Assembly (NCBI RefSeq): GCF_964204645.1
Contig: NC_134030.1
Coordinates: 8,831,222 to 8,895,221, forward strand
Source of the DNA: Tubulanus polymorphus
Taxonomy: Eukaryota > Animalia > Nemertea
DNA: 64,000 nt
Direction: 5' to 3'
Shown: positions 12-23,677 of the stretch, one piece after another
Layout: each line of letters begins with the position of its first letter
How positions within the stretch are numbered: the first letter of the stretch is position 1
Notes under the pieces: model-generated
Seen by the model: only the letters and a program-made list of their open reading frames with translations
The model's database searches: none
Told to the model about the DNA's origin: nothing
Position numbers and translations under genes: made by a program

Positions 12-2934
12 CGTTGTTCGGGGAGATCACTCGTCTGCTGAATCACGTCATGGCCGTCGGTTGCCACGCGTTGGACGTCGGAGCGATGACGCCGTTTTTC
101 TGGCTTTTCGAAGAGCGTGAGAAACTGTGCGAAATCTACGAGCGCGTTTCCGGCGCTCGCATGCACGCCGCTTACGTTCGCCCGGGAGGAGTGGCCTTGG
201 TAAATATATAAAAGAAAAAATTGAAACGATCATTTTATGATTAATTGCTTTGGGGGCATGTACAGGGTGCAGGGTGTACTCTGATCTGGAAAACTCGGGG
301 AATTCGAAGAATTTTACCAAAAACTGGAAAACTCTGGGAATTCAGATTAAGACTACGTGTTTCTTTATCAATACGTGATTCGATGAAAAATGAATGAATT
401 GTAACATTTTAAACCTAGAAATTTCTCAGATTCACTTGGAGAATTTAGTGCAATCACTTGGAAAATTCAGGGGAAAGTTCGGGGCTTTGTAAATGGGTAA
501 AAAGTGGTTGTTATGATGTAAATTTGATATGTAAAAATCATCAAATGCTATGCCAACTCAGCAAATTCTTTTTAACTCGGTGCATAATCTACCGGGGTAT
601 TTGATAGATTCAGAAGACATTCACAATCCATGCCCCCAATAGTTGCTCAGCATGTTAAACTCGTATTATTGTATACTGTCTAGGATATGCCGCTCGGTTT
701 AATGGATGATATTTACGAATGGATCGAGAAATTCGGTCAACGAATCGACGAAGTTCACGAACTGTTGTCGAATAACCGAATCTGGAAAGAGCGAACAATC
801 GACATCGGTGTCATCTCGTCGGAGGAGGCGTTAAACTATGGCTTCAGGTATGTACAGCTGATCATCAGATGTTCCTAGACAATATTGATGAAAAAAAAGG
901 CGCGAATTAGAAAAGAACAGGGTTCATACAGATCAAGGAATTCAGGAATATTTTTCCCTGCTGAAGAAAATCAAAGAATCTGGACTCCCGGCTTTTTCCT
1001 TTAAAGTCATGGAATTTCAGATTCACAGAAATTTTCCAAGTACAATTGTTTTGTATCTACTGCCATGCATACTCTAGGCAGCATGCTGTCTATTTATTAC
1101 CAGCACACCTATTATGCACACTGATTATTGTTCTGAAACCACTTCAATGATTGAGCAATAAAGAGACCGGCTACAGGTTGATACAATAACCATGGCTTGG
1201 TGTCATTTATAAAGAAAACAAACAGTTAAAGGTTTCAATGGAAGATTTTTAAGCGCTTAATGAGTTGCTTTTACGATTTTCAGTGGAGTGATGTTGCGCG
1301 GTTCCGGTATCAAGTGGGATCTCAGGAAATCGCAGCCGTACGATAACTACCACAAGGTCGATTTCGACGTTCCGATCGGAAAATCCGGAGACACATACGA
1401 CAGGTATGCGCACTATTCATCCAGTCGTTTCATAGTCGATTTCATCAGAAGCAAATTTAACGCTAGGAAGACGTATCGTTTCTAGGTATCTGTGTCGTAT
1501 GGAAGAGATGAGACAATCGATTCGAATTATACATCAGTGTTTGAATAAGATGACGCCTGGAGAAGTCCGTGTCGACGACGCTAAAGTATCTCCTCCTCGT
1601 AGAGGTGAAATGAAGGTTAGTTGAATCAAAAATTTGAAATGACACGCGTACACAAGTGCCTCGTACAAGGTCCCTACAACTCCTCGATTTCTTTGTATCT
1701 CCTTCTAAATTGAATTTTAAAAGAGTCAACATTAATTGGGTAGATTTTACAGTACAGTAAATTTTCTCTTTTGAAACACCTTACGATATTTTCTAGGAAT
1801 GACTTATCAGTAGAGGCCTTGTTCTTACAGAGTGGCCACTGGCCTGCAAAATAGGGAAAATTCATCTATGTCTTACATCTTTGACCGTGTAAAATCAAAT
1901 CAAAGTGGACCCTTAGTACGTGTAGTGTAGACTGGTCCGTGCGATGAACGCATTTCATGACAAAGGTTTCCTGTGCATCTGCCACATGGAGTTTATATCT
2001 CCCTGCGATTGGCGATTCAGAAACTCGTACTTGTAATGTATAGAAGCATAATGTTTGGTTTCTTGTGCCATTGCAGGAATCGATGGAAGCTTTGATTCAT
2101 CACTTCAAGCTCTATTCGGAAGGTTATCAAGTGCCGCCGGGCAATACTTATACGGCGATCGAAGCTCCGAAAGGTGAATTCGGTGTCTATCTCATATCCG
2201 ATGGCACAAACAAACCGTACAGATGTAAAATCAAAGCTCCGGGTTTCGCTCATCTGGTAAGTATAGAACTGTCTTGGGGTACTTGTGAGACTTGTACAAG
2301 TCCATCAAATCCTTTTGAGTGCCCTTCTCTATTTCGTCAACAAAGATGATAGGAGCATTTCAGCGCGAGGTAACCTAATATTGCCTTCTGGACATCGAAG
2401 TACCCTTTTGGGATGTGACAAGTTCTTCACAACTAGCCCCTCATTGCGGGAGTACACCTAATATTGCCTTCTGGACATCGAAGTACCCTTTTGGGATGTG
2501 ACAAGTTCTTCACAACTAGCCCCTCATTGCGGGAGTACACCTAATATTGCCTTCTGGACGTCGAAGTACCATTTTGGGATGTGACAAATTCTTCAGAACT
2601 AGCCCCTCATTGCGGGAGTACACCTGATATTGCCTTCTGGACATCGAAGTACCATTTTGGGATGTGACAAGTTCTTAACAACTAGCCCCTCATTGCGGGA
2701 GTACACCTAATATTGCCTTTGTTGATATCAAAGTACCCTATTGGGATGTGACAAGTTTTTCAGAACTAGCCCCTGACTGTTAATCCATCGATGGTCAACA
2801 CACTTGTAAGGTTTAATTATTTGACTGTCCATTTTCAGGCTGGTTTACATAAATTATCAAAAGGCCACATGTTAGCCGATGTCGTCGCGATTATCGGTAC
2901 ACTGGACGTAGTGTTCGGAGAAGTCGATCGATAA
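12..2934 (+). CDS. NDUFS2: NADH dehydrogenase [ubiquinone] iron-sulfur protein 2 (complex I 49 kDa subunit), 3' part; 5' exons lie outside the window
   Basis: Exons with GT-AG borders: 12-199, 684-847, 1284-1403, 1486-1615, 2077-2256, 2839-2934 (TAA). Translation has family motifs [46 protein letters not shown], and the C-terminus DVVFGEVDR*. Confidence 0.97.
2373..2775. repeat. 83-bp minisatellite, ~5 copies, in the last NDUFS2 intron
   Basis: Unit ACCTAATATTGCCTTCTGGACATCGAAGTACC...CATTGCGGGAGTAC starts at 2373, 2456, 2539 and onward, near-identical, with no unique spacers. Confidence 0.95.
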
Positions 2935-3091
2935 TGCGAAACTGAAACCAAAATAGACGTCTTAGGAAATTAATGTTGAAATAGCTTTAGCGATTTGTAA
3001 ATAAGTACTAACAGTGACAAATACGTAAGATTCTCTCGTCTTGTACATAGTATTAACCATTAGTGAAACTCTATGTCCGTGTTGTGAGGAA

Positions 3092-3347
3092 ATAATCCCA
3101 CTCCGATATGACGAAAGACAAATTCCAAAAGGTTTCCGTTAAACTAATCATTTATTGATTCGATGTTTTTCGATTATAACCTAATACCGTCAGTCATACA
3201 GGAATACCGAGAAAACTATGATATATATATTTAATATTCCTGAAGATGACTATTAGGTTATAGCCGAAACATCGAATCAATAAATATATAAGCTTTAAAG
3301 GAAATTTTTCGGACCTCATCTTTCTCGTTATATTAGTGTGGGATTAT
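3092..3347. mobile_element. Palindromic MITE-like element (related copies at ~25460-25806 and ~58603-58807)
   Basis: Long imperfect inverted arms ATAATCCCAC...GTGGGATTAT and ATTTATTGATTCGATGTTT...AAACATCGAATCAATAAAT. The core TTCCTGAAGATGACT is shared with the ~58700 copy. Confidence 0.7.
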
Positions 3348-4373
3348 GTATTGTTCGGGTGAATCAAGCAGGTGGTCTTAATTTTTGGAGAGCCTCGCTT
3401 GCCGAGGTGTCGCATCTAAGAGAAATTGATTTTCTAACTTAAGATTTTCTTATTTATAAACTGTCTGCAAAATGTTCTCAGTAATCCCCAAGAGTTGTTC
3501 AGACTGATATTTTTCGCTTGTTGTTAATATTTTGAGTAGTGCTAGGTATAAATTGTATCGATTTGAAGCCTATAATTAAATGTGATGAATGGAAAGACTC
3601 TCGAGTTCGTGTTGGTGTACTGTATAGAAAGAATATTGTGGTATTTGAATAAAAATGATTGTAAAAGAAAACACGACCGTGTGTGGTGAATGTTAATTTT
3701 TTGGGTTTTAATCCAAGCTTCCATATTCAAGCGTAGCGAGTTTTCTGGAGATTCAGATTTAGTTTGGTCAATGGAAGAGCCAATGAATAGCATCAGACCG
3801 GTCTCCCTTTTTGTTTGGACTGTCATTGAATAGGGTTCCTACGACCGATTCCTTCTAGAAAACGGAAAATGTTTTAAAAGGAGCTAGAAACTACTTTAAT
3901 TTGAGCGAATTGCCCAAAACTTCTATTCAGAGAAATAGGCTATTAGAAATTGTTTGTCTCATTAGTTCGGTTATCGGAGTTAGTCGACTATAGTCGAACT
4001 AAATGAAACGGAATGTCCGTTAGTCGGAACTATGGTCCGGAAATCGTCGACCACGCAATTGAACACGGTTGCTATAGTTCGGACCTGGCTGATACTGTGA
4101 AATACGTTACGATCAAACTAGTTTTCCTTGAACCACTAGGTAAACTACAGTTTACCTAGTAATTCAACTAATAGTGTGTTCCGTGAAAAGCTGTGAATTT
4201 TATAGGGCAGTGAAATGGGGGTGTTACTAAAACTGTTTTCTGAAACGAAGACCTATGCACTTTGCGATACTAGAACTATGCCTGACTAAAACGAAGACCG
4301 AAGACCTACGCACTCATTAGAAATCATCACTTGGGCACTTGCTGTGTATTCAACCTCTGTCAATGAGTTTAGG

Positions 4374-4777
4374 CATGGACGTATCTCCTAGTTTATACGT
4401 CCATGGTTTAGGCAATACCAGATACAAACAAACGCATATGAAACGTAAATTGGTCGGTTTTCTCTGGTGCGTATAGTCTTCGTTTTAGCAGTGCTTTGTT
4501 TTAGTAACGCTTGTTGCTATATCAAACTTAACTAAACGAATGACAAATTTCAAAATCAATCATTTATTCTCATACAACAATTATACAAAATGCCAGGTTT
4601 GTGCTCGAGGAATTATAATGTAAGCTCCTCAAACACGGACTTTCAAAAACAACTAGTCCAACCACCATAGGCGTATAAACTATAAACGAGAGTTTATACG
4701 CCCATGGTCCAACCATAGACTCTAAAACAGAAACGTCTATGGCCCACAACCATGGACTCTTAAACCGTGAGTCCATG
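4374..4777. mobile_element. Four tiny CAT...ATG palindromic elements (27-41 bp), P-element-like termini
   Basis: 4374-4405 has a perfect 7-bp direct repeat GTTTAGG on both sides. 4666-4706, 4714-4741 and 4751-4777 share CAT(A/G)G(A/G)C...G(T/C)C(C/T)ATG ends. Confidence 0.55.
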
Positions 4778-4809
4778 GCTCCCCGCACTAAAACCAGAGA
4801 TAAACCTGG

Positions 4810-7100
4810 CCTAATACTCTGGAAAGTGTAGGATTAAGTAATCAATCTGATTTACCTTCTTACATCATTTTATTTTCACATCATATTAACTTTTAGCTTA
4901 TTTTCTCAAATTTTAATAGATATTTTATTTCTATTATTACTATGTATGAAATTGTACTAACTTAAAACAAAGTTACATGTAAGGTATTTAGAAGTCTTTA
5001 TCTACGATACATTTCCACTACAGCTGATTTATACAATTTGCATCAATAGGAAAATAACAAAAATACACAAAGAATAATAAACTTTGATCCATAAAAAAAC
5101 CGAAAAATGGACTAGTCTAAGATTATGAATTTGACAATTCATGATGTCAATATAAACGACACATTGTTATATTTTATGAAATATGAATCTATCATGTCAA
5201 CTTTTCAAATGACATCGATTGAGGACATCTCATTTATCAAGAAAAAGCTCAACTTTATTCGATAGGACCTTAATAAATCAATGTTTTATGAACAATTGAC
5301 ATGAACATGTCATTTTATCTCCACAACAACAATTATACCTAAATGACAGGTATTCATGTACTGGAGGAAGCGCCACATGCATTTACAAAAACGTGACCTG
5401 TATTTCAAAAAAAGTCTCCAACATAAAAAAATTAGAACCGGAGATAAAACCACAAATTCAATCTGGAAAGCTAAAGATTAGATTAAATAAACAGTCTTTG
5501 ATGTAATTTTCATTAACATTATTTTACAAGATAGCTAGTTTTGCCACCTTTGCCTTGTCTTTAGGAGGTTTCAAGACATTATCAAATTGGTTATTTTCTC
5601 AAATGTTACAGTTAATGCAAAGTATTTTGGAGGTATTCTCTTCTATGCATTCAGCAAGAGTATATAAATCGAGTATATAAATATTGTTCAACTGCCAATT
5701 TGAATAGAGCTAGGGCAATTACTAATAACTAATGGCTTTGCTACAATTAAGTTAAGATTCAATAACTAACTTTTTGAGGTGCTTCTTGTGCAGACATTCA
5801 GAACCCATACAGACATTGTTAAACCATGGTTTTAGAGTCCATAGCTAGCGTAATCTACTGATTAATACTGTTCATATATCCTCATTTATCAAGAGACTGC
5901 TCCTCTATTTTGCTACTCAATTTTCCATAAGGGCCTTAATGAAAATAGTATTTTATGAACCATTGATGAACACCACAGTATGAATGACGAAACATGTATA
6001 TCATTTTATTCTTAAACAACAACCCCACTAAATGAGTTATTTATAAAACAGTTCAACATAAAACCTACAAATTCACTCACTCTGGAAAGCGTAAGGTAAA
6101 CTAATTAATCTTAGTTATTACAAGAAAACTAAAAACATTGCCAAAAATTTCCTCGTCTGAGAGATTTCTTTAATTATCAACTAGCTTATTTCACAAATCA
6201 AATGTTATATTGAAACAAAGCAGGGTCTGATTTAAGCACTAGTCCAATTGCCCGAGACAAGTATATTTTCATTAGGGCATGTAGGTTATCACAATCACTC
6301 GTCCACCGGGCTTGTGTAATTCTATATCTCAAAGCTTTTATCCCACTCGATGCTAGGGATGATTGTGTCTCAATCGGACTACTCATGTAGGGCAAGTTGA
6401 TTTTTGAGGGGGCAAGTGATATTACATATGCTTGCCCCAAGGTCAAGTGGCATTTATTCCTTAGATCAAACCCTGCAAACTATTATAAAGGTTTTTCTTC
6501 GTGATGATTTTAAGATAAATCGAGTATCTTCATATAAATATGGTTTGACTGACGAAGCTACGGCAACTTCTTAATTTGTATTATTCAACTTGATAGTAGA
6601 TATCAATACAACTCTATATATAGATCAGAAATTCTTCTTGTCCAGATATTACAGGCCCCACACAAATGCGGTTAAACTGATAATCAAAACAAAGCTAGGA
6701 CAATTGACCAATTAGCACTATATCCTCGAGTTAGCCTATCAAGAAACTGCTCCTTTTATTCTATGCTCCTGCTAATCAAATCAGTATTTTATGAACCACT
6801 GAAAAGCCCCACATTGGAATTGTTGCTATAGAAATTAACAACTAAAAAGTTTCAACACGAATGATGAAAATGTACATCGTTTTATTCACATGACAATAAT
6901 ATCTTAAACGAGGAATCATCATCATGCAAGTTCCTAATTTCCAAACATGCGTTATGTGTTACAATAACAGTCTCCAACAGAGCATTAAAACTAGAGATGG
7001 AACATACAGATTCACTCTGGAAATCTAAGTATCAACTAATCATTACTTTCACTAGAAAACTAGAATTTTGCCTATTTTGCCCTGTCTTAAAGATGTCCAA
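4810..7100. repeat. Old, diverged tandem duplication (~620-930-bp period, 3-4 copies)
   Basis: Recurring blocks: TCTGGAAA at ~4819, 5462, 6081, 7016; (T/C)TATCAAGA..GCTC at ~5234, 5886, 6737; TTTTATGAAC at ~5284, 5951, 6787; TCATTTTAT/TCGTTTTAT further on. Confidence 0.7.
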
Positions 7101-8635
7101 GCACCTTGGCATTAAATACTAACTATTCTGATTTTTTTTTCTGGCAGCTGTGAAAACAACAACATAATCATACAATCGGTAACTTTTCAATAACATCAAT
7201 AACTTAAGTTTATAGCTGTTTTACATTCTTTCTAAAAAGTAATAGCTGTTTTACATTCTTATGTACCAGATTTTAGATAGTAAGTCTACCCCCGTATAAC
7301 AATCAATGGTCACAGCAGTGATTGAGTGCGACTAGTTCATAGGACGGTCGATCTTTCATCATAGTTATTCAAAGCATTTTATCATATCAGTTATTTCTTT
7401 TAAGTGTGTTCGATTTAGTTAAGGTTTATGGTTATTTGTTTTGTTCATTACAATAACTGAGTCCGATAGAATGCTTAAAACAACAACAGAAAAGATCTCG
7501 GGTTTTCGCTATACTTAAGGAATATTGTTCGATAAATGAAGAACCTTGTTGATAAATATTTGAAAAAATGCCTTTTTAGGTAAATAGAATATTAATTTGT
7601 TGTTTGTTTCTATTGTTGTTTATTATTTTTATCTATTTTTTTAATATTATCTATTTATGTATGTACTTGTATTTTGTTTTATTTACAATTTATTTATTGG
7701 TTTTTTTTTAAATCAATTTTTTTATTAATTTATGTACTTGTAGTTTGTATTATGTATTATTTATACGCCTCTATTTACAACTGCAGGCATTTTTTCACTG
7801 TAAAGTTTCCGGGTCCATTTTAAAAAAGCGCTACCAATTCACTGCCACTCCTTTATAATCATTATACATCCAATTTGAAGCTAAGTGATTATTCACTAGA
7901 GCCATCTCGTGATATGGATTTACCCATCACAATAACGTAGTTCAAAGTTCAAACAGCTATAAAACAATGTTAAAACGTTCAAAATTAGTTCTAGCTATAA
8001 CTTTATGCCTTGTTATTCCTAGCTTTACCTCTCAAATGTAAATAATGGTCTCCTTTCAAATAAAGCTTTTGATTTCTAATACGTAGCTATGATCATCAAA
8101 CAGATTGATGGAGGCTCAAAGTTAAAACTTGATGTGAAAATCAACATATACGATTCAATTGTGAAATCAGTAACATGGGCCTTCGAAGATATATATCCAT
8201 CAAATTGATACATCTACAATTCAGCAAATACTTAATATTTGTACATCAACACTGGCCTAATGTTATGTTCTATGTTTCCTAACTATGTGATACCTACACG
8301 GACAAATAGCCATAGTTGACTATGTTTAACTATGGTAAAGTTTAAAGATTACTCACAATATCATGTTGAAACTATATCTCAGTTTAGGAGTTAACTCAAC
8401 AGACCTGTGAGGCTGAACAAGGCGCTCAATGCGACCATTTACCCCTAGTGACTAACCTAACTTGACTTCACTATCAACCAAGGATCAAATACCAATATCG
8501 TGAATTAATGGAGCTTAGCTTTTATTAGACTCTCACATTGCATTAAACATTATAAAATAATTTCCTTGAAAACATTATATCAGACTGGTTTGAAAAAGGG
8601 TGATAAGTAAAAAAATTAATACTTTACTATTGAAA

Positions 8636-8835
8636 TCCGCTATTGTCTTTGCCGCTCCTTGATCTCAGTGTTTATAAGATGCACTATTGCTTATGCTGCT
8701 CCTAATAAGATACACTATTGTCTTTGCTGCTTTTAAAGCAGTGCTTATCCTGAATCAGTGTTTATGAGATAATCCATTAGCTTTGTCGCTCGAATCAGTG
8801 TTTATAAGATTCATTATAGTCTCTGCTGCTCCTGG
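8636..8835. repeat. ~35-50-bp degenerate tandem repeat
   Basis: CTATTGTCTTTGC(C/T)GCT and TCAGTGTTTATAAGAT motifs recur about 5 times. Confidence 0.75.
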
Positions 8836-8949
8836 TAAAATATTTCATAGCAATCAACCACCGTTTGTAGAAGAAACCATCGTTGAGTTATTAATCCGTT
8901 GCTGGGTCCTCAACTTCTAATCTGGGCCAATCGGTATTCATCTTCTTGT

Positions 8950-11900
8950 AGATTTTTTGACGAGTAGTTGATCTCAAGCTGGGTTTTTTCTCATAGTTGA
9001 TATTTAGCTGCAATAATTAAAAGAAGATATCCTGTAATGACAAAATATTTCAATAAGAATTAATCGTAATAATTTCATGTATATCAAGTTACCTTTTATG
9101 ATTGCTTGGTTCGTTATCGGTGTGGATCATCTAAAGTTGGTGGGTTAATGAGTTCGATCCTAGTTGGCTGTGCGATCTTCAAGTTGGTTGATTTTTTACG
9201 AATAGTTGTTCTCAAACTGGGTTTTTTTCGCATAGTTGAAATTTAGCTGCAAAGATTAAAAGAAGATATCCTGTAATGACCAAATATTTCAATAAGAATT
9301 AATCGTAATGATTTCATGTATATCAAGTTACCTTTTATGATTGCTGGGTTCGTTATCAGCAATTATCTTATAAGTTGGTTGGTTAATGAGTTCGATTCTG
9401 TTGGCCTCATCTGTTCGCTGTTCCAGTTGGTCGATTTTGGACGAGTAGCTGATCTCAAGCTGGGTTTCTTCTTATAGATGAAATTAAGCTGCAATGATTA
9501 AAAGAAGATATCCTGTAATGACAAAATATTTCAATAAGAATTAATCGTAATAATTTCATGTATATCAAGTTACCTTTTATGATTGCTGGGTTCGTTATCG
9601 GCAATTATCTTATTAGTTGGTTGGTAAATGAGTTCGATTCTGTTGGCCTCATCTGTTCGCTGTTCCAGTTGGTCAATTTTGGACGAGTAGCTGATCACAA
9701 GCTGGGTTTCTTCTTATAGTTGAAATTTAGCTGCAATGATTAAACGAAGATATCCTGTAATGACCAAATATTATATTATCTTAATAATTTCATGTATATT
9801 AACTTACCTTTTATGATTGCTGGTTTCATTATCGGCGATTATCTTATTAGTTGATTTGTTAATGAGTTCGATTCTAGTTGCCTGTGCACTGTTCAAGTTG
9901 GTTGATTTTTTACGAGTAGTTGTTCTCAAACTGGGTTTTTTCTCATAGTTGAAATTTAGCTGCAATGATCAAAAGAAGATATCCTTTCATGACAAAATAT
10001 TTCAATAAGAATTAATCGCAATAATTTCATGTATGTCAAGTTACCTTTTATGATTGCTTGGTTCGTTATCGGTGTGGATCATCTAAAGTTTGTGCGTTAA
10101 TGAGTTCGATTCTGTTAGGCTCATCTGTACGCTGTTCAAGTTGGTCGATTTTGGCCAAGTAGTTGTTCTCAAGCTGGGTTTTTTCTCATAGTTGAAATTT
10201 AGCTGCAATGATCAAAAGAAGATATCCTTTAATGACAAAATATTTCAATAAGAATTAATCATAATAATTCCATGTATATCAAATTACCTTTTATGATTGC
10301 TGGTTTCATTATTGGCGATTATCTTATTAGTTGATTGGTTAATGAGTTAGATCCTAGTTGGCTGTGCGTCATTCAAGTTGGTCGATTTTTTACGAATAGT
10401 TGTTCTCAAACTGGGTTTTTTTCGCATAGTTGAAATTTAGCTGCAAAGATTAAAAGAAGATATCCTGTAATGACCAAATATTTCAATAAGAATTAATCGT
10501 AATAATTTCATGTATATCAAGTTACCTTTTATGATTGCTGGGTTCGTTATCAGCAATTATCTTATAAGTTGGTTGGTTAATGAGTTCGATTCTGTTGGCC
10601 ACATCTGTTCGCTGTTCCAGTTGGTCGATTTTGGACGAGTAGCTGATCTCAAGCTGGGTTTCTTCTTATAGATGAAATTAAGCTGCAATGATTAAAAGAA
10701 GATATCCTGTAATGACCAAATATTTCAATAAGAATTAATCGTAATAATTTCATGTATATCAAGTTACCTTTTATGATTGCTGGGTTCGTTATCGGCAATT
10801 ATCTTATTAGTTGGTTGGTAAATGAGTTCGATTCTGTTGGCCTCATCTGTTCGCTGTTCCAGTTGGTCAATTTTGGACGAGTAGCTGATCTCAAGCTGGG
10901 TTTCTTCTTATAGTTGAAATTTAGCTGCAATGATTAAACGAAGATATCCTGTAATGACCAAATATTATATTATCTTAATAATTTCATGTATATTAACTTA
11001 CCTTTTATGATTGCTGGTTTCTTTATCGGCGATTATCTTATTAGTTGATTAGTTAATGAGTTCGATTCTAGTTGCCTGTGCACTGTTCAAGTTGGTTGAT
11101 TTTTTACGAGTAGTTGTTCTCAAACTGGTTTTTTTCTCATAGTTGAAATTTAGCTGCAATGATCAAAAGAAGATATCCTTTCATGACAAAATATTTCAAT
11201 AAGAATTAATCACAATTATTTCATGTATGTCAAGTTACCTTTTATGATTGCTTGGTTCGTTATTGGTGTGGATCATCTAAAGTTTGTGCGTTAATGAGTT
11301 CGATTCTGTTGGGCTCATCTGTACGCTGTTCAAGTTGGTCGATTTTGGCCAAGTAGTTGTTCTCAAGCTGGGTTTTTTCTCATAGTTGAAATTTAGCTGC
11401 AATGATCAAAAGAAGATATCCTTTAATGACAAAATATTTCAATAAGAATTAATCATAATAATTCCATGTATATCGTTATCGGTGTGGATCATCTAAAGTT
11501 TGTGCGTTAATGAGTTAGATTCTGTTGGGCTCATCTGTACGCTGTTCAAGTTGGTCGATTTTGGCCAAGTAGTTGTTCTCAAGCTGGGTTTTTTCTCATA
11601 GTTGAAATTTAGCTGCAATGATCAAAAGAAGATATCCTTTAATGACAAAATATTTCAATAAGAATTAATCATAATAATTCCATGTATATCAAATTACCTT
11701 TTATGATTGCTGGTTTCATTATCGGCGATTATCTTATTAGTTGATTGGTTAATGAGTTAGATCCTAGTTGGCTGTGCGTCATTCAAGTTGGTCGATTTTT
11801 GACGATTAGTTGTTCTCAAACTGGGTTTTTTCGCATAGTTGAAATTTAGCTGCAATGATTAAAAGAAGATATTCTGTAATGACAAAATATTTCAATAAGA

Positions 11901-14075
11901 ATTAATCATAATAATTTCATGTATATCAAGTTACCTTTTATGATTGCTGGGTTCGTTATCGGCAATTATCTTATTAGTTGGTTGGTAAATGAGTTCGATT
12001 CTGTTGGCCTCATCTGTTCGCTGTTCCAGTTGGTCAATTTTGGATGAGTAGCTGATCACAAGCTGGGTTTCTTCTTATAGTTGAAATTTAGCTGCAATGA
12101 TTAAACGAAGATATCCTGTAATGACCAAATATTATATTATCTTAATAATTTCATGTATATTAACTTACCTTTTATGATTGCTGGTTTCATTATTGGCGAT
12201 TATCTTATTAGTTGATTGGTTAATGAGTTCGATTCTAGTTGCCTGTGCACTGTTCAAGTTGGTTGATTTTTTACGAGTAGTTGTTCTCAAACTGGGTTTT
12301 TTCTCATAGTTGAAATTTAGCTGCAATGATCAAAAGAAGATATCCTTTCATGACAAAATATTTCAATAAGAATTAATCGCAATAATTTCATGTATGTCAA
12401 GTTACCTTTTATGATTGCTTGGTTCGTTATCGGTGTGGATCATCTAAAGTTTGTGCGTTAATGAGTTAGATTCTGTTGGGCTCATCTGTACGCTGTTCAA
12501 GTTGGTCGATTTTGGCCAAGTAGTTGTTCTCAAGCTGGGTTTTTTCTCATAGTTGAAATTTAGCTGCAATGATCAAAAGAAGATATCCTTTAATGACAAA
12601 ATATTTCAATAAGAATTAATCATAATAATTCCATGTATATCAAATTACCTTTTATGATTGCTGGTTTCATTATTGGCGATTATCTTATTAGTTGATTGGT
12701 TAATGAGTTAGATCCTAGTTGGCTGTGCGTCATTCAAGTTGGTCGATTTTTGACGAGTAGTTGTTCTCAAACTGGTTTTTTTCGCATAGTTGAAATTTAG
12801 CTGCAATGATTAAAAGAAGATATTCTGTAATGACAAAATATTTCAATAAGAATTAATCATAATAATTTCATGTATATCAAGTTACCTTTTATGATTGCTG
12901 GGTTCGTTATCGGCAATTATCTTATTAGTTGGTTGGTAAATGAGTTCGATTCTGCTGGCCTCATCTGTTTGCTGTTCAGTTGGTCGATTTTGGAGGAGTA
13001 GCTGATCTCAAGCTGGGTTTCTTCTTATAGGTGAAATTTAGCTGCAATGATTAAAAGAAGATATCCTGTAATGACAAAACATTTCAATAAGAATTAATTG
13101 TAATAATTTCATGTATATCAAGTTACCTTTTATGATTGCTGGGTTCGTTATCGGCAATTATCTTATTAGTTGGTTGGTAAATGAGTTCGATTCTGTTGGC
13201 CTCATCTGTTCGCTGTTCCAGTTGGTCGATTTTGGACGAGTAGCTGATCTCAAGCTGGGTTTCTTCTTATAGATGAAATTAAGCTGCAATGATTAAAAGA
13301 AGATATCCTGTAATGACCAAATATTTCAATAAGAATTAATCGTAATAATTTCATGTATATCAAGTTACCTTTTATGATTGCTTGGTGCGTTATCGGCAAT
13401 TATCTTATTAGTTTGTTGGTCAATGAGTTCGATTCTGTTGGCCTCATCTGTTCGCTGTTCCAGTTGGTCAATTTTGGACGAGTAGCTGATCTCAAGCTGG
13501 GTTTCTTCTTATAGTTGAAATTTAGCTGCAATGATTAAACGAAGATATCCTGTAATGACCAAATATTATATTATCGTAATAATTTCATGTATATCAAGTT
13601 ACCTTTTATGATTGCTGGGTTCGTTATCGGTGCGGATCATCTAAAGTTGGTGGGTTAATGAGTTCGATTCTGTTGGCCTCATCTGTGCACTGTTCAAGTT
13701 GGTCGATTTTGGACTAGTAGTTGATCTCAAGCTGGGTTTTTTCGCATAGTTGAAATTTAGCTGCAATGATTAAAAGAAGATATCCTGTAATGTCCAAATA
13801 TTTCAATACGAATTAATTGTAATAATTCCATGTATATCAAGTTACCTTTTATGATTGCTGGTTTCGTTATCGGCGATTATGTTATTAGTTGGTTGGTAAA
13901 TGAGTTTAATTCTGTTCGCTGTGCGCTGTTCAAGTTGGTCGATTTGGACGAGTAGTTGATCTCAAGCTTGGTTCTTCTTGATAGCTGAAATTTAGCTGCA
14001 ATAAAAAATATATCCTGTAATGAAAAAATATTTCATTTAGAATTTTTATAATCATTTCCATGAGAATAAACTTAC
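8950..14075 (-). repeat. Tandem array of ~22 units of ~230-242 bp; each reads on the minus strand as intron plus non-coding exon
   Basis: Unit anchors (GATATCC/GATATTC) at ~9031, 9270, 9512, 9754, 9983, 10226, 10464, 10706, 10948, 11177, 11420, 11636, 11873, 12115, 12344, 12587, 12824, 13065, 13307, 13549, 13784, 14014. Minus strand: CATAAAAG|GTAA(C/G/T)T ... TCTTCTTTTAATCATTGCAG|CTAAAT. Confidence 0.95.
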
Positions 14076-14414
14076 ATTTCAAAATTGCTGGATGCGGTGC
14101 TCCCTGATGCTAGAAAATAGTTTGAAGGAGAGGGGTTAGTAAAAGACAGCTATTAGCAAGAGGAATAAGACCTAAGTTTAGGATATCCTGTCAGGATAAG
14201 GCTCTCAATCTGACATACACAGTGAAATTGAAATATTCTCCCTTCCAAATTCAGGAATTTATTTGTGCATGTACAGATTTGTTTTATCTCCCTTCGATCG
14301 GAAGTAAATCTGCGTGAAATGATTTTGGCAATATGTATCAAAACTAATACAGCTGTAAGAAGAATCAGCTACATTTTAAATGTCCATGGACCTGAATGAA
14401 AAACAATTTCACAT

Positions 14415-15460
14415 AACATATTGAATTTACCTTAATCGTAGATATCTTATAGTAATATATTAATGAGTTTTCACCTTTGATTCTAATTGTCAGTTAAACA
14501 ATATCTATTATGCGTAACTTGACACACAGTATGGCTTTTAGATGAATCAGTTAGGTGTAGGTAGATTTTGGCTATTGTGAAGAACATGATTAGTTGCCAT
14601 AAGCACGGCAGTTGGAGATGTAAATACTGATCAGTCGATGAGACTGATTCAGATGTGCTCATACATATATCAGCTATATTTAAATTTTCAGTTTTACGAC
14701 ATTTATATTATGGACATGTATTACATACCGTATAAATAATTTTTGATCTTAGAAATATTGAATTCATCTTAATTGTGGATCTAAGCCATTGGTTAATGAG
14801 CAATTTTTCCTAGCTATATATGACAATTTTCAGTTAAACAATAATCATAGCGCATAACAAGGCACAGAGTATGGCTCTGTGGAATGATTTGAATCAATGA
14901 AAGCTTCTTTTACTCTAGATTTATCAAAGTGCTGAGACCTAATCACGGTTTCTAAAAGACCTGCAGTCCATAGTTATCCCCATATATATATTACACCAGA
15001 TCTCGATAGAGCCCTAGACAATATTTTATACATCTTTCCCCCAGAAATTCATTAATGCAATGGGTAAAGCAGCATATAATATATACTGTAAAGTGCCTGA
15101 ATGTTTATAAATGTATCAATATACTATTTGTAAAAAAATCTATTAACTGACGATAAAGTTTAATTGATATATATCTTTACAGGTAAAGCCAGCCTACATG
15201 TATACGGGGCCCTAAAATATCTACACCCGAAGAGTTTCTCGTCAAACATTATAAGATATTGAATGATTGCTAATATCTAAGCGATTGGTTAATTAGTAAA
15301 TTGTCCTATCTATATCTTGATTGTCAGTTAAACAAGCTTTATGAGGCCTGAAATATCTACGGTACATTTGAAAAATTTCACATTAGATATTGAATTTAGC
15401 TTAAGTGTACAAATCTTTTAATCAATAACTGACCAATCTACATTTTTATTATCAGACCAA
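14415..15460. repeat. Diverged dispersed/tandem ~100-bp block, 3-4 copies
   Basis: TTGAAT...TTAAT(G/T)AG...TCAGTTAAACAA blocks at ~14421, 14758, 15259, with a weaker copy at ~15390. Two copies end in CACA(C/G)AGTATGGCT; CCT(A/G)AAATATCTAC occurs at ~15211 and ~15347. Confidence 0.65.
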
Positions 15461-16023
15461 AGAATATTCAAGGGACCTCACTCAATCATTTCGTCTGATA
15501 TTGTAAATATTCAAGCAATCATTGCCCTAACTATATTTCAATTTACTTTTAACAATATGCCGGCCATAGAGCTTCAATAAAGTAGTGCGGAGATGGTTAG
15601 CTTGACCAGCATCTCTATCCTCACCAGTGCCTATGCATTCTACCCCAGATATGAAAAATCAACTTAGCTTTATGTATGTATGCATTCCTGTTGCCATGCA
15701 GGATGAGACTGCCAGGTTTGGTTGCGGCAGGACTTTCGGTGTTTGGTTCATTCAACGTGGAGTCTTTTGTGGGCACTTCTAGTGGGTAGATTTTAGATTG
15801 GCCTTTCCAGATAAACCTGAAATGAGTAAAAGAACGATATTCTGTAGTTACACAATCCTTTCTGAATCATACATCGTAATTTACACATGTATCAACTTAA
15901 CTTTCAATATTGCTGAGTTCAGTGTTCTTTTTTCGCCATCTTCTGTAGTCGCCTTCAGCATCTTCTTCTTGATCTAGGGAGTCCTGAAATGAAAAAAAAG
16001 ATACGAGCGATGAAAACCTGGTA

Positions 16024-16824
16024 CGGAACAAAACTAATGTCCGAAAGCTTTTCAGCTCTCCGTCGCCGGTCACATACCGAGAACACCAGACAAAGAGCCA
16101 GCCAGGAATATACTGCCCTCTACACGCCCTCACACAGAACACGAAAACCAGGATGACGACGCCTTACTTTCACCATTTACCGACAGGGTGTGCCGGGTGA
16201 CGTCAGTAACTGACAAACCTATCAAATTACCCAAGCCAAAAATAGGGCAGCGCAACTGGATTGCCCGCACTAGCACTCAAAGGAAGACAAGACTTAGCCC
16301 TGCCCGAAGCAACCCACGCGGAATCAATGAATACTAACACTCAAAGGAAGACAGGAAAATTAATCCCTGCCCGAAGCAATCCCTTAAAAGGAATCAATGA
16401 ATGCCAGCACGCAAGCGATCCCGCAGTGAATCAATGAATCCTAGCACGCAAAGGAAGACAGGGAAATTAATCCCTGCCCGAAGCAATCCCTTAAAAGGAA
16501 TCAATGAATGCTAGAACGCAAAGGAAGACAAGACTAAATCTTTGCCCGAAGCAATTCCTGAAAAGGAATCAATGAATACTAGTAGACAGTCCAGCTTTAC
16601 CACTCCATTTTTAACCTATGCAATCCGACTGACTTGCCCGTCATTGACGTCACCCAGCACACTCTGTCGATACATGGGGAGAGTGAGGCCTCGTCATCCT
16701 GGTTTTCGTGTTCCGTATGAGGGTGTGTAGAGGGCAGCCATTTCCTGACCGACTCTTTGTCTGACATCCTCGACATGTGACCGGCGAAGGAGAGCCGACA
16801 CTTTGGGACATTAGTTTTGTTCCA
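16024..16824 (-). other. Long imperfect inverted repeat (arms ~16024-16278 and ~16574-16824) predicted to fold as an RNA hairpin on the minus strand
   Basis: Arm 1 GGAACAAAACTAATGTCC...CACGAAAACCAGGATGACGA...GGGTGACGTCA aligns with the reverse complement of arm 2 over ~250 nt. No TSD seen. Confidence 0.93.
16273..16582. repeat. ~65-70-bp tandem repeat (~4.5 copies) filling the hairpin loop
   Basis: CAAAGGAAGACA...TGCCCGAAGCAA...GAATCAATGAAT recurs at ~16278, 16342, 16449, 16519, plus one short copy. Confidence 0.9.
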
Positions 16825-17358
16825 GCAAACGTTGAAATTCGACAGAGAAATCGGCCCTGAAAAATAGAAAGGGTTAAATCCTGAAAAATAGAACGGATTA
16901 ATTAACACGGAACAGCACAGGACAGCACGGAGACGAACAGTTACACATAAAACATAAAGACGTCGTTCCTCAGGAAGCAGGAACAGGAGCGGGAGCGCAG
17001 CGAAGATCGCCAGGAGGAGAATCCACGGTAGCATGTTCACAGTGTGAGTGTGCAGAGGTGAATGGCCTATGCTTGTGTACACCGTGGTCAGCCGGTGACG
17101 TATTCAATAGCGCGTATAAATGATATCAAATATCAAATATCAATTTCAAACTCTGAATAGCCGCAATTGTGTCTCTATTGTTGAATGGTTTATCATTATG
17201 AAAGATTCCACCGCCGGGTTGAATACGCGCCAGTAGCCAGCCGAACAATATAGTGGAGGAACTTTAATAAGGCCATGAAATAAATTACTTGATTCCCAAC
17301 AGCTACTTCCGAATTTATTAGCCGCCGCCTGTTTTTTTTTTTCTTAAATTCTAGAATA

Positions 17359-17562
17359 GGTAAAAGTGCAGATCCGCACCTCCTCGTGATCGACGCAATC
17401 TACTGAATGACAGAATCAAGGCTAAAATCTAGTGAAGATATCTTAGAATTAACCAATGGAAATCGTACTGAATTGCTGATGACATTTTGAATCTGAAACA
17501 ATGATAATTAATGTAATTGATTGAACCGTTTACGGGGAGAGGTGCGGATCTGCGCTTTTACC
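17359..17562. mobile_element. MITE with GG-initiated TIRs and 8-bp TSD (Merlin-like)
   Basis: TIR GGTAAAAGTGCAGATCCGCACCTC / GAGGTGCGGATCTGCGCTTTTACC, with CTAGAATA duplicated at 17351-17358 and 17563-17570. Confidence 0.85.
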
Positions 17563-18494
17563 CTAGAATAATTTGTAAATCAAAATTATACCGACCTATA
17601 GTGGTCTATTTGAGTAATTGGGGGAAACCCACTAATACCATGTATTCGTCATTAATCATCATTTCATACCGTTATCACAGAATCCCGTCAATAGACAGAT
17701 TTTCATTAAAAAACTCCTTGATTCAATTGAGGGGAGACTTAATTACTTGGAGCACCGATCCTCTGAAATTCTGCCAAAACACTTCATGCTTTACCACTCA
17801 TAATTTGAAAAAAAACCCAAATTGTTTTCTTTGATTTTGATGCTGGATTAAACGGTACATCATCATGCAAATTTAGGAAAGTCCATATTAGAATTTCGTT
17901 TCTTGTTCCAATTTACTCTTATCCCATTATTGATTTTGGTCAAGAGTATGGCGGTATCAAATCATGTACAGGGTCAGTAATCAAGATTCAAGATAATAAG
18001 TCGAAATTCGACATTTAAGTCGAAATTGTGAAAAAATTAACTCGTATGGCATCTACTAGGGGCTTGATCCGTATTTGAAAGAAAAAAATTTTTTTTCTTT
18101 AATTTTGATACTGGACTCATTAAACGGTTCCTCATCATGTAAATTAAGGAGTCCATAAGAATTTCGCCGAATTTCGTTTCTTGTTACTAGGACTTTGGGT
18201 CAACTAGCATTACGCCGGGCTTTTTTATGGACCCTGGTGTTAAATTGAAACGACTGGCGACGTCGCCGACACCGTCAACTATTTATTGAACTATTTAGCA
18301 ATTCGCGTCCGCCCCTTACTCCGGAGCCGCATCAGAAAACTCCTAATTTTGATCCTGATTTTACACTTTCCCGACGAACTGTCAAAATCTGACCTTCCTT
18401 GCAGATTTCTCCCCTAGATTTCTCGCTTCACCGACTTCTGAAAATTAATGAACGAAGCCGACTTTTCGTTTTTTAACTAGAAGCGTACGAGACG

Positions 18495-23677
<5,183 letters not shown>

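Follow-up and report, generated by a model that had tools for sequence, protein, structure and literature searches.

A dispersed composite repeat with a strand-specific fold-back and an exon/intron-like satellite in the ribbon worm Tubulanus polymorphus

The stretch of DNA analysed here (the window) comprised 64,000 nt of contig NC_134030.1 of the ribbon worm Tubulanus polymorphus. The features found between ~3966 and ~18000 are listed in Table 1, and this part of the window sits between NDUFS2 and malic enzyme. Two features were prominent, a fold-back hairpin and a tandem array of 242-bp units with splice-like borders. An earlier note, made from the sequence of the window, had assigned both of them to one minus-strand transcript of a lineage-specific regulatory RNA gene.

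Table 1. Features of the repeat copy in the window (window coordinates; 3' and 5' are given in the minus sense).
Feature	Position	Strand	Evidence or remark
Left end region (3' in minus sense)	3966..4180	-	homology to other copies begins at ~3966
4.7-kb non-coding tail module	4181..8927	-	80-97% conserved, at least 40 scored copies per probe
Internal satellite, 21 units of 242 bp	8954..14058	-	Tandem Repeats Finder
Deletion junction, including GTAAGT at 14075	14059..14104	-	1.8-kb segment of at least 10 other copies missing
Spacer, weak internal repeats	14105..15649	-	scarcest module, 113 candidates
Two decayed exon-like units (15984-15900 and 15816-15650)	15650..15984	-	TTTCAG acceptors
Fold-back 3' arm (minus sense)	16017..16263	-	inverted repeat, fold
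Fold-back loop, 107/68-nt tandem repeats forming small hairpins	16264..16586	-	length differs among copies
Fold-back 5' arm (minus sense)	16587..16823	-	overlaps 3' half of ORF relic
145-codon ORF, signal-peptide-like start	16597..17034	-	relic or chance ORF
Upstream promoter-like part, TATA-like motif 17115-17122	17035..17358	-	present in other copies
Nested 204-bp MITE	17359..17562	.	24-bp terminal inverted repeats, 8-bp target duplication CTAGAATA
Further right-hand family sequence	17563..17990	-	window copy breaks off here

The array had a period of 242 and a higher-order period of 480, with 85% matches. Every unit carried the acceptor TTGCAG/CT and the donor AAAG/GTAAC on the minus strand (the slash marks the splice boundary), and consisted of an exon-like part of 150-158 nt and an intron-like part of 85 nt with GT..AG. 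Among 138 units, GT was kept in 136 and AG in 137, and the intron-like part was better conserved than the exon-like part (0.956 vs. 0.896, p = 0.001). The exon-like parts had stops in all frames, and their lengths fell into every residue class modulo 3 (66/46/26). The RNA of the array unit was less structured than its shuffles (z +2.1). The tandem arrangement of a non-coding exon and a better conserved intron resembles the snoRNA and miRNA host-gene arrays (SNORD116/115, C19MC). However, nothing was found in Rfam at E ≤ 1 over 3500-18600, and no C/D or H/ACA boxes were visible by eye. The number of units among copies ranged from 1 to more than 34 directly seen, with about 100 or more inferred, and the array would be an internal VNTR that grows and shrinks through unequal exchange. 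About 180 array units contained no intron-less (processed) junction, and this speaks against a route through spliced RNA. The earlier note had also described several generations of local duplication in this region. Short motifs and weak repeats inside 14400-15420 (14402-14451/15371-15420 and 14779-14841/15275-15335) agreed with this, but the array unit had no BLAST-level similarity to 15600-16000, and the duplication claim therefore rests on these motifs and weak repeats.

The arms of the inverted repeat (16025-16263 and 16587-16823) were 76% Watson-Crick paired and enclosed a loop of 323 nt. Their mismatches differed between the strands, with 35 G:U pairs on the minus strand vs. 9 on the plus strand (binomial p = 1e-4). 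The folding energy was -490.5 kcal/mol (z -56) on the minus strand and -351.2 kcal/mol (z -18) on the plus strand, and all 14 of the 14 copies folded 80-135 kcal/mol better on the minus strand. In the consensus stem of the family, all 215 of 215 pairs were Watson-Crick (183) or G:U (32) on the minus strand, and these 32 G:U pairs were A.C mismatches on the plus strand. RNAalifold yielded the same stem as the consensus, in which the wobbles occurred in both arms (18 and 14). The wobble asymmetry was thus already present in the family consensus. The wobble strand and the strand of the array GT..AG agreed, and the minus-strand polarity that the earlier note had read from these two signals was supported.

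Five probes across the interval were used for colinearity (4450, 7400, 14600, hairpin arm, and 16850). Each probe had ~110-320 candidate copies, spread over all 12 large contigs. For the hairpin arm probe, the best 40 of 316 candidates were scored and showed 88-99% identity on contigs C1-C11; the other probes had 113-308 candidates each. The copy numbers are rough, as scoring was limited to the 40 best candidates of each probe. The 10-15 kb protein-less repeat is present in at least 50, probably 100-300, copies in the ribbon-worm genome. Paralogous loci, which the earlier note had suggested looking for, were found: 51 loci matched at least two probes each and lay on all chromosomes, and 49 of them had the order and orientation of the window. 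The spacing of the 7400 and 14600 probes among these loci varied from 1.9 to 37 kb, and the 242-bp array was present at a minimum of seven other loci. The flanking DNA was unrelated from copy to copy and was not co-duplicated. The hairpin and the array were both multicopy and colinear elsewhere, which indicated that a large composite repeat is represented by one copy at ~3966 to ~18000 of the window. Judged from this shared dispersal, the two features belong to the same repeat unit with one polarity, as had been proposed, and the window contains one copy of it and not a unique gene. The unit is 10-15 kb in size and can reach about 40 kb in copies with a long array. Its modules have a fixed order on the minus strand: the upstream promoter-like part, the short ORF relic, the 0.8-kb fold-back, two decayed exon-like units, the spacer, the hypervariable 242-bp satellite, and the 4.7-kb tail.

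The window copy differed from the other copies in several respects. At the left end, the 82-nt piece 3966-4047 had the opposite orientation to that in at least 25 other copies, which did not share 4048-4180. The right ends of the copies were ragged. Several copies terminated within the upstream promoter-like part, and others extended 0.9-1.3 kb beyond the right break of the window copy. In the window, 18073-18185 was a 76% duplicate of 17803-17907. The nested MITE was absent from the family consensus. The window copy is a passenger: it lacks 1.8 kb internally, its right end is truncated and its left tip inverted, and a MITE is nested in it.

These observations bear on the proposal of a single regulatory RNA gene at this locus, divergent from malic enzyme. 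In its favour, the strand signals are consistent with one another, and there is a promoter-like region on the upstream side of the hairpin. However, the entire interval recurs at many other loci in the same order, with differing flanks, and the window copy is internally deleted, truncated, and MITE-bearing. The splice signals that were thought to link the hairpin to the array were all present at their places, but the donor GTAACT at 16944, the one good donor that precedes the hairpin, arose by a change private to the window copy, and 14 other copies have GTTACT. The units with the acceptors 15984 and 15817 ended in AAAG/TTAAGT and AAAG/CTAAGT in 13 of 13 aligned copies, and therefore the hairpin-proximal units have no GT donor. 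As to the putative terminal exon, the AATAAA at 8526-8521 lies 4.5 kb within the repeated unit, the homology to other copies continues to ~3966, and nothing marks this site as a transcript end. We regard a single lineage-specific gene between NDUFS2 and malic enzyme as extremely improbable. The outcome that the earlier note had set against its own proposal, insertion of one known transposon, was found in part: the interval behaves as one repeat insertion, but it belongs to no known family.

The repeat was shown to code for nothing and to contain no selected coding sequence. The 145-codon ORF was open in most copies, and its consensus had 147 codons, with 3 and 5 stops in the other two frames. 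Its substitutions (32 synonymous, 61 non-synonymous, and 4 stop) were close to the neutral expectation (27.9, 64.2, and 4.9) and were distributed over the codon positions as 31:31:35. No homologs were found among 5.8 billion proteins, no exact database record existed for this ORF, and no ORF in the interval had a Pfam match. A protein-coding role of the 145-aa ORF was rejected on these grounds. In the tail module, the longest ORF was no more than 82 aa; LINE or transposase remnants in 3900-8950 were also rejected, with eight ORF pieces and no Pfam match. The signal-peptide-like N-terminus of the consensus ORF and the exon/intron-like layout of the array could suggest decayed genes of secreted repeat proteins, with a signal-peptide exon and repeated exons, amplified by segmental duplication. 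The neutral ORF without Pfam match or homolog, the array "exons" in all mod 3 classes with stops in all frames, and the flanks that were not co-duplicated made this explanation highly improbable.

The substitutions in the stem indicated how the pairing had evolved. The shared sample comprised 15 events from 14 copies, which are not phylogenetically independent, and the pair set of the stem was chosen by RNAalifold on the minus strand. Pairing was kept by 13 of the shared substitutions and broken by 2, whereas 39 of the 82 private substitutions kept it and 43 broke it (Fisher p = 0.005; p = 0.015 without the divergent copy L035). Shared G>A changes affected 5 of 32 G:U pairs vs. 1 of 98 G:C pairs (p = 0.003), and private G>A changes affected 5 of 32 and 15 of 98, respectively (p = 1). 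Pairing was kept during family diversification and not in individual copies once they were laid down. Because the shared changes keep pairs and the private ones do not, the pairing was under selection in the source copies alone, a pattern that a mobile element would be expected to show.

A non-functional origin of the strand bias was considered, in which an old perfect inverted repeat in ordinary junk underwent strand-asymmetric mutation by deamination or editing of one strand. It agrees with C>U being the commonest shared change (7 events). However, the private substitutions showed no asymmetry (42 C>U vs. 40 G>A), and the shared G>A changes fell almost only where G:U became A:U, a concentration that is not predicted by one-strand mutation bias. 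The 5' neighbours of the wobble G's were not ADAR-like either, and this origin is very unlikely. ADAR hyper-editing itself was rejected as the source of the wobbles, since 12 of the 32 wobble G's had a 5' G, there was no ADAR-type neighbour bias, and the shared changes were C>U and G>A, not A>G.

The explanation that we favour, with somewhat better than even confidence, is that the interval from ~3966 to ~18000, in minus-strand orientation, represents one copy of a dispersed, high-copy, protein-less composite repeat that is putatively transcribed and mobile. The unit would be transcribed on the minus strand from its own upstream region, and the fold-back would be a cis-acting RNA structure that the source copies need in order to be expressed or to spread themselves. 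G:U pairing may keep the RNA double-stranded and lower the DNA palindrome to 76% identity, which would make a long inverted repeat tolerable in DNA. Hairpin transgenes designed with G:U pairs through C-to-T changes in one arm still form dsRNA and escape the self-silencing of perfect inverted-repeat DNA (PMC9263138). As proposed for the repeat, dsRNA is kept via wobbles and the DNA inverted repeat is imperfect. These transgenes are engineered plant constructs with a chosen target (PMC9263138), whereas the repeat is a natural animal sequence with wobbles in both arms.

Terminal inverted repeats, LTRs, or an obvious target duplication were not found at the ends of the window copy. No inverted repeat linked the two ends of the window, where the copy is truncated, and no direct repeat linked 3000-8950 to 14000-19000. 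A poly(A) or T-run was absent at the two left ends inspected, those of the window copy and of copy L037, and no autonomous partner came to light. Given these absences and the ragged right ends, mobility was inferred from dispersal and not from mechanism. The candidates for 400-nt probes along the unit (270, 308, 113, and 176) showed no 3'-to-5' copy-number gradient. Unlike in Foldback elements (FB/Tetris-type), the inverted repeat was internal (16017-16823 in a unit of at least 14 kb) and the ends had no inverted similarity. Unlike in LTR retrotransposons or LARDs, no direct long terminal repeats were found. The SVA elements of hominids are also non-coding composites with fixed-order modules and an internal VNTR that differs among copies. 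SVA retrotransposons have a poly(A) tail, target duplications, and LINE-1 as the known driver; in contrast, the repeat had no poly(A) at the inspected left ends, no target duplication that was found, and no 3'-to-5' gradient.

The same pattern as that of G:U pairs in RNA would be left by G:T wobbles in single-stranded DNA. The repeat could be a DNA-level mobile element, e.g., a non-autonomous Helitron/Helentron-like rolling-circle element with captured gene fragments and a central satellite, whose fold-back acts in a single-stranded DNA intermediate. The absence of terminal inverted repeats, LTRs, and obvious target duplication, the central tandem array of variable length, and the gene-like fragments that retain their "introns," with no intron-less junction between array units, would all agree with this. 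Helentron derivatives with satellite arrays and without target duplications are known in lophotrochozoans (PMC7492417). These Helentron-derived HINEs (Cg_HINE of the Pacific oyster; DINE-1) are similar to the repeat in being dispersed and non-autonomous, with a central variable array, a fixed orientation, and no evident target duplication, and in occurring in a lophotrochozoan (PMC7492417). However, HINEs are small and have 11-12-bp subterminal inverted repeats, a microsatellite, and a 3' palindrome (PMC7492417). T-rich insertion sites also define such elements. The repeat, at 10-15 kb, is far above the size of described HINEs and is gene-like, and its RNA-type fold-back lies internally and spans 0.8 kb, whereas Helitrons have short hairpins at the 3' end. 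A DNA-level element of this kind is an unlikely explanation.

The copies could also form a multi-copy family of hairpin-RNA (endo-siRNA) genes, in which Dicer would cut the 240-bp stem and the array would be a spliced non-coding scaffold. The resulting small RNAs would silence the family's own copies, a sister family, or the source gene of the arm. The strand-specific stem is long and almost perfect, and one arm overlaps the ORF relic with its signal-peptide-like start, as if copied from a gene. The known precedent is the hpRNAs of Drosophila, in which, as would be the case here, a long inverted repeat yields a single RNA strand. They are also similar in having a loop and arm built by local duplication and one arm that resembles a coding fragment. 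In Drosophila, one or a few maintained host loci encode hpRNAs, their target genes can be identified, and their Dicer-2 products, 21-22-nt small RNAs from the stem, are proven. In contrast, the repeat probably has 100-300 dispersed copies that decay neutrally after insertion, and no target was seen outside the family, the best 40 of 316 arm matches being all full-length family copies. The ORF had no protein relatives. A Dicer locus was present in the genome; only one Dicer_dimer locus and no RdRP match were found, which are weak negatives. The control of the RdRP search showed it to be uninformative. In plants, hairpins rich in G:U trigger RNAi effectively (PMC9263138). On balance, we consider such a gene family improbable.

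A more speculative form of the mobile repeat, which we hold to be improbable, is a mobile "RNA gene," i.e., a protein-less element of 10-15 kb that would carry its complete transcription unit along as it spreads. The components would be a promoter, a 240-bp dsRNA module buffered by wobbles, and repeated non-coding exons that are spliced, with the introns as the conserved portion. Small RNAs from the hairpin would act against a rival, which could be a host gene or a sister family whose hairpin differs. The intron/exon borders would be the sites of module exchange, of the kind observed between the window family and the L002/L007 variant.

For annotation, about 1% of the genome (a few hundred copies of at least 10 kb) mimics "novel hairpin-RNA" or "repeated-exon lncRNA" genes, and all copies are best masked as one family. 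The repeat also illustrates how, in a spiralian genome, a dispersed element can carry along a satellite of exon/intron-like units that varies from copy to copy. Should its proposed transcription hold, the repeat would be a rare example of a large non-coding element in which a long, strand-specific dsRNA is the main conserved feature. This dsRNA would be kept by selection in the source copies, as a natural version of the G:U trick used in transgenes.

The interval between NDUFS2 and the malic enzyme gene, in what is eukaryotic DNA, is occupied by one copy of a dispersed repeat. With the left hairpin arm as probe, the best 40 of 316 candidates were scored; they lay on contigs C1 to C11 and showed 88–99% identity. 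Probing with 481 bp of the array detected arrays at seven or more other loci, most of which had a hairpin copy within a few kb, in the order and orientation of the window. Probes at 4450, 6400, 7400, 14600, and 16850 gave 113–308 candidates apiece. Loci were defined by clustering the scored probe matches and were counted if at least two different probes were present. Among the scored matches there were 51 such loci, 49 of which were colinear with the window in order and orientation; of the remaining two, one consisted of two adjacent copies merged by clustering, and the other was a rearranged locus. The flanking DNA was unrelated between different copies. The earlier note had described the hairpin and the array as parts of a unique regulatory RNA gene: the colinear loci confirmed that they form one unit, but the unit is a multicopy repeat rather than a unique gene.

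Coordinates of the repeat copy, its neighboring genes, and a family variant (window positions unless a locus is named)
Feature	Position	Strand	Size or structure	Remarks
Last NDUFS2 exons	~2065-2935	+		Pfam Complex1_49kDa
Tandem array	8954-14058	- (splice-signal strand)	period 242, higher-order period 480	Tandem Repeats Finder, 85% matches
Inverted repeat (hairpin)	16017-16823		arms ~240 nt; 323-nt loop of 107/68-nt tandem repeats	arms 76% Watson-Crick complementary
ORF	16597-17034	-	145 codons	signal-peptide-like start; extends through hairpin 5' arm
Nested MITE	17359-17562		204 bp	24-bp terminal inverted repeats (96%); 8-bp target duplication CTAGAATA
Malic enzyme, start	~18495	+		Pfam malic and Malic_M
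Family variant	L002:1180-1310 and L007/L026			swap point is the intron/exon border at window 15817

Mismatches between the hairpin arms would become G:U pairs at 35 positions in a minus-strand RNA and at nine in a plus-strand RNA (p = 1e-4), and the minus strand folded at -490.5 kcal/mol (z -56) vs. -351.2 (z -18) for the plus strand. Together with the signals of the period-242 array, this wobble bias and this fold are well beyond chance; therefore, the observation made from the sequence alone was real and largely right. The minus-strand fold was better by 80–135 kcal/mol in all 14 independent copies. On the minus strand, the family consensus comprised 183 Watson-Crick and 32 G:U pairs, and the same 32 were A.C mismatches on the plus strand. 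RNAalifold returned the same stem from these sequences, in which many one-sided changes preserved the pair and seven double changes occurred. The agreement of copies, consensus, and stem indicates that the strand asymmetry is ancestral to the family. A palindromic CRE-like octamer, TGACGTCA, was present in both arms (16195-16202 and 16647-16654), and a related ACGTCAC motif was conserved upstream of the ORF start.

Single-sided substitutions shared by at least two copies kept the pairing in 13 cases and broke it in two, whereas private ones kept it in 39 and broke it in 43 (p = 0.005, or 0.015 when the divergent copy L035 is left out). Shared G>A changes occurred at five of 32 G:U pairs vs. 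one of 98 G:C pairs (p = 0.003), and private G>A changes affected both kinds of pair equally. A mutation bias of one strand as the source of the wobbles does not explain the shared G>A changes at G:U pairs, and among private changes C>U and G>A were equally frequent (42 and 40). An origin through ADAR is also unlikely, because 12 of the 32 wobble G's were preceded by G and the shared changes were C>U and G>A, not A>G. The simplest reading of these substitutions is that selection favored pairing of the single-stranded minus strand in the source copies and not in the copies after their insertion, which is the pattern of a mobile element and not that of hundreds of working host genes.

In each array unit, the minus-strand acceptor TTGCAG|CT and donor AAAG|GTAAC bounded an "exon" of 150–158 nt, with stops in all frames and lengths that were not multiples of three. 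Across 138 units from nine loci, GT was retained in 136 and AG in 137, and conservation of the 85-nt intron-like part was 0.956 throughout vs. 0.896 in the exon-like part (p = 0.001). Exon edges were also better conserved than the exon interior (0.88–0.90) in the window array, L014-L025, and L037. This is the opposite of the ordinary exon/intron contrast, and the better-kept intron-like part resembles snoRNA or miRNA host genes. Neither an RNA family (no Rfam match at E <= 1) nor a fold (the unit RNA folded worse than 198 of 200 shuffles) accounted for this conservation, and no unit junction lacking the intron-like part was found among ~180 units. The 7400 and 14600 probes were 1.9 to 37 kb apart across loci vs. 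7.2 kb in the window; the arrays of L022 and L023 each exceeded 8.2 kb, reaching past the end of the DNA examined, and one copy on C5 had a single unit. Thus, the array is a hypervariable satellite inside the element.

The splice signals said to link hairpin and array fared less well. The GTAACT donor at 16944 was private to the window copy, with GTTACT in the 14 others. The acceptors at 15984 and 15817 were good and belonged to the two exon-like units adjoining the hairpin; however, these units ended in AAAG|TTAAGT and AAAG|CTAAGT in all 13 aligned copies, and therefore no canonical donor paired with them. L002 and L007 had the hairpin module in common exactly as far as the 15817 acceptor and then carried a different exon-like unit, which suggests that modules are exchanged at intron/exon borders.

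No ORF in 3900-18000 had a Pfam match. The 145-codon ORF was open in 12 of 15 copies. Its private changes (32 synonymous, 61 non-synonymous, and four stop vs. 27.9, 64.2, and 4.9 expected) and the substitutions by codon position among copies (31:31:35) fit neutrality, and the changes shared between copies showed no different pattern. No homolog was found among 5.8 billion proteins. A selected gene was rejected on these grounds, and the ORF may be the relic of a captured gene fragment.

No LTRs, terminal inverted repeats, poly(A), or target duplication of the big repeat were found in the DNA examined, which stopped short of the true termini. The left end was constant and the right ends varied between copies, a picture resembling 5' truncation; probes of equal length gave no copy-number gradient. 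The closest parallels already described are oyster Helentron derivatives that carry satellites (PMC7492417), SVA-type composites, Drosophila hpRNA genes, and, as a parallel to the wobble design, transgenes with G:U hairpins, which retain dsRNA yet escape the silencing to which perfect inverted-repeat DNA is subject (PMC9263138); none of them fits as a family. One Dicer_dimer locus was found in the genome, and an RdRP search of it, itself uninformative, gave no match.

The window copy lacked a 1.8-kb segment found between the array and position 14105 in at least 10 other copies. Its left-terminal 82 nt (3966-4047) were inverted relative to at least 25 other copies, and short inverted ATAGTTCCGAC-like motifs lay on both sides of this piece. 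Its right side ended near 17990, and L032-L036 extended 0.9–1.3 kb further. A piece of the nested MITE was also present in L029. A fragment of a second small palindromic element, built of TAAGTCGAAATTCGAC-like motifs, was observed at ~17990-18070 and at L035 ~4360-4710; its insertion point in the big repeat differed between the two copies. In L037 (~1053-1093), a 41-nt perfect palindrome with a flanking TTCCGAC duplication was inserted in the left end. Outside the repeat, the last NDUFS2 intron held ~7 tandem copies of a 60-nt unit (2360-2780), and just 3' of the stop codon a 256-nt self-complementary stretch (74%; 3092-3347) is possibly another small inverted-repeat element.

The window locus is an ordinary and slightly broken copy from a repeat family that is itself unusual. 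The chief points of this family, which is of moderate interest, are an apparently selected, wobble-buffered RNA-type hairpin and an intron-conserved satellite.
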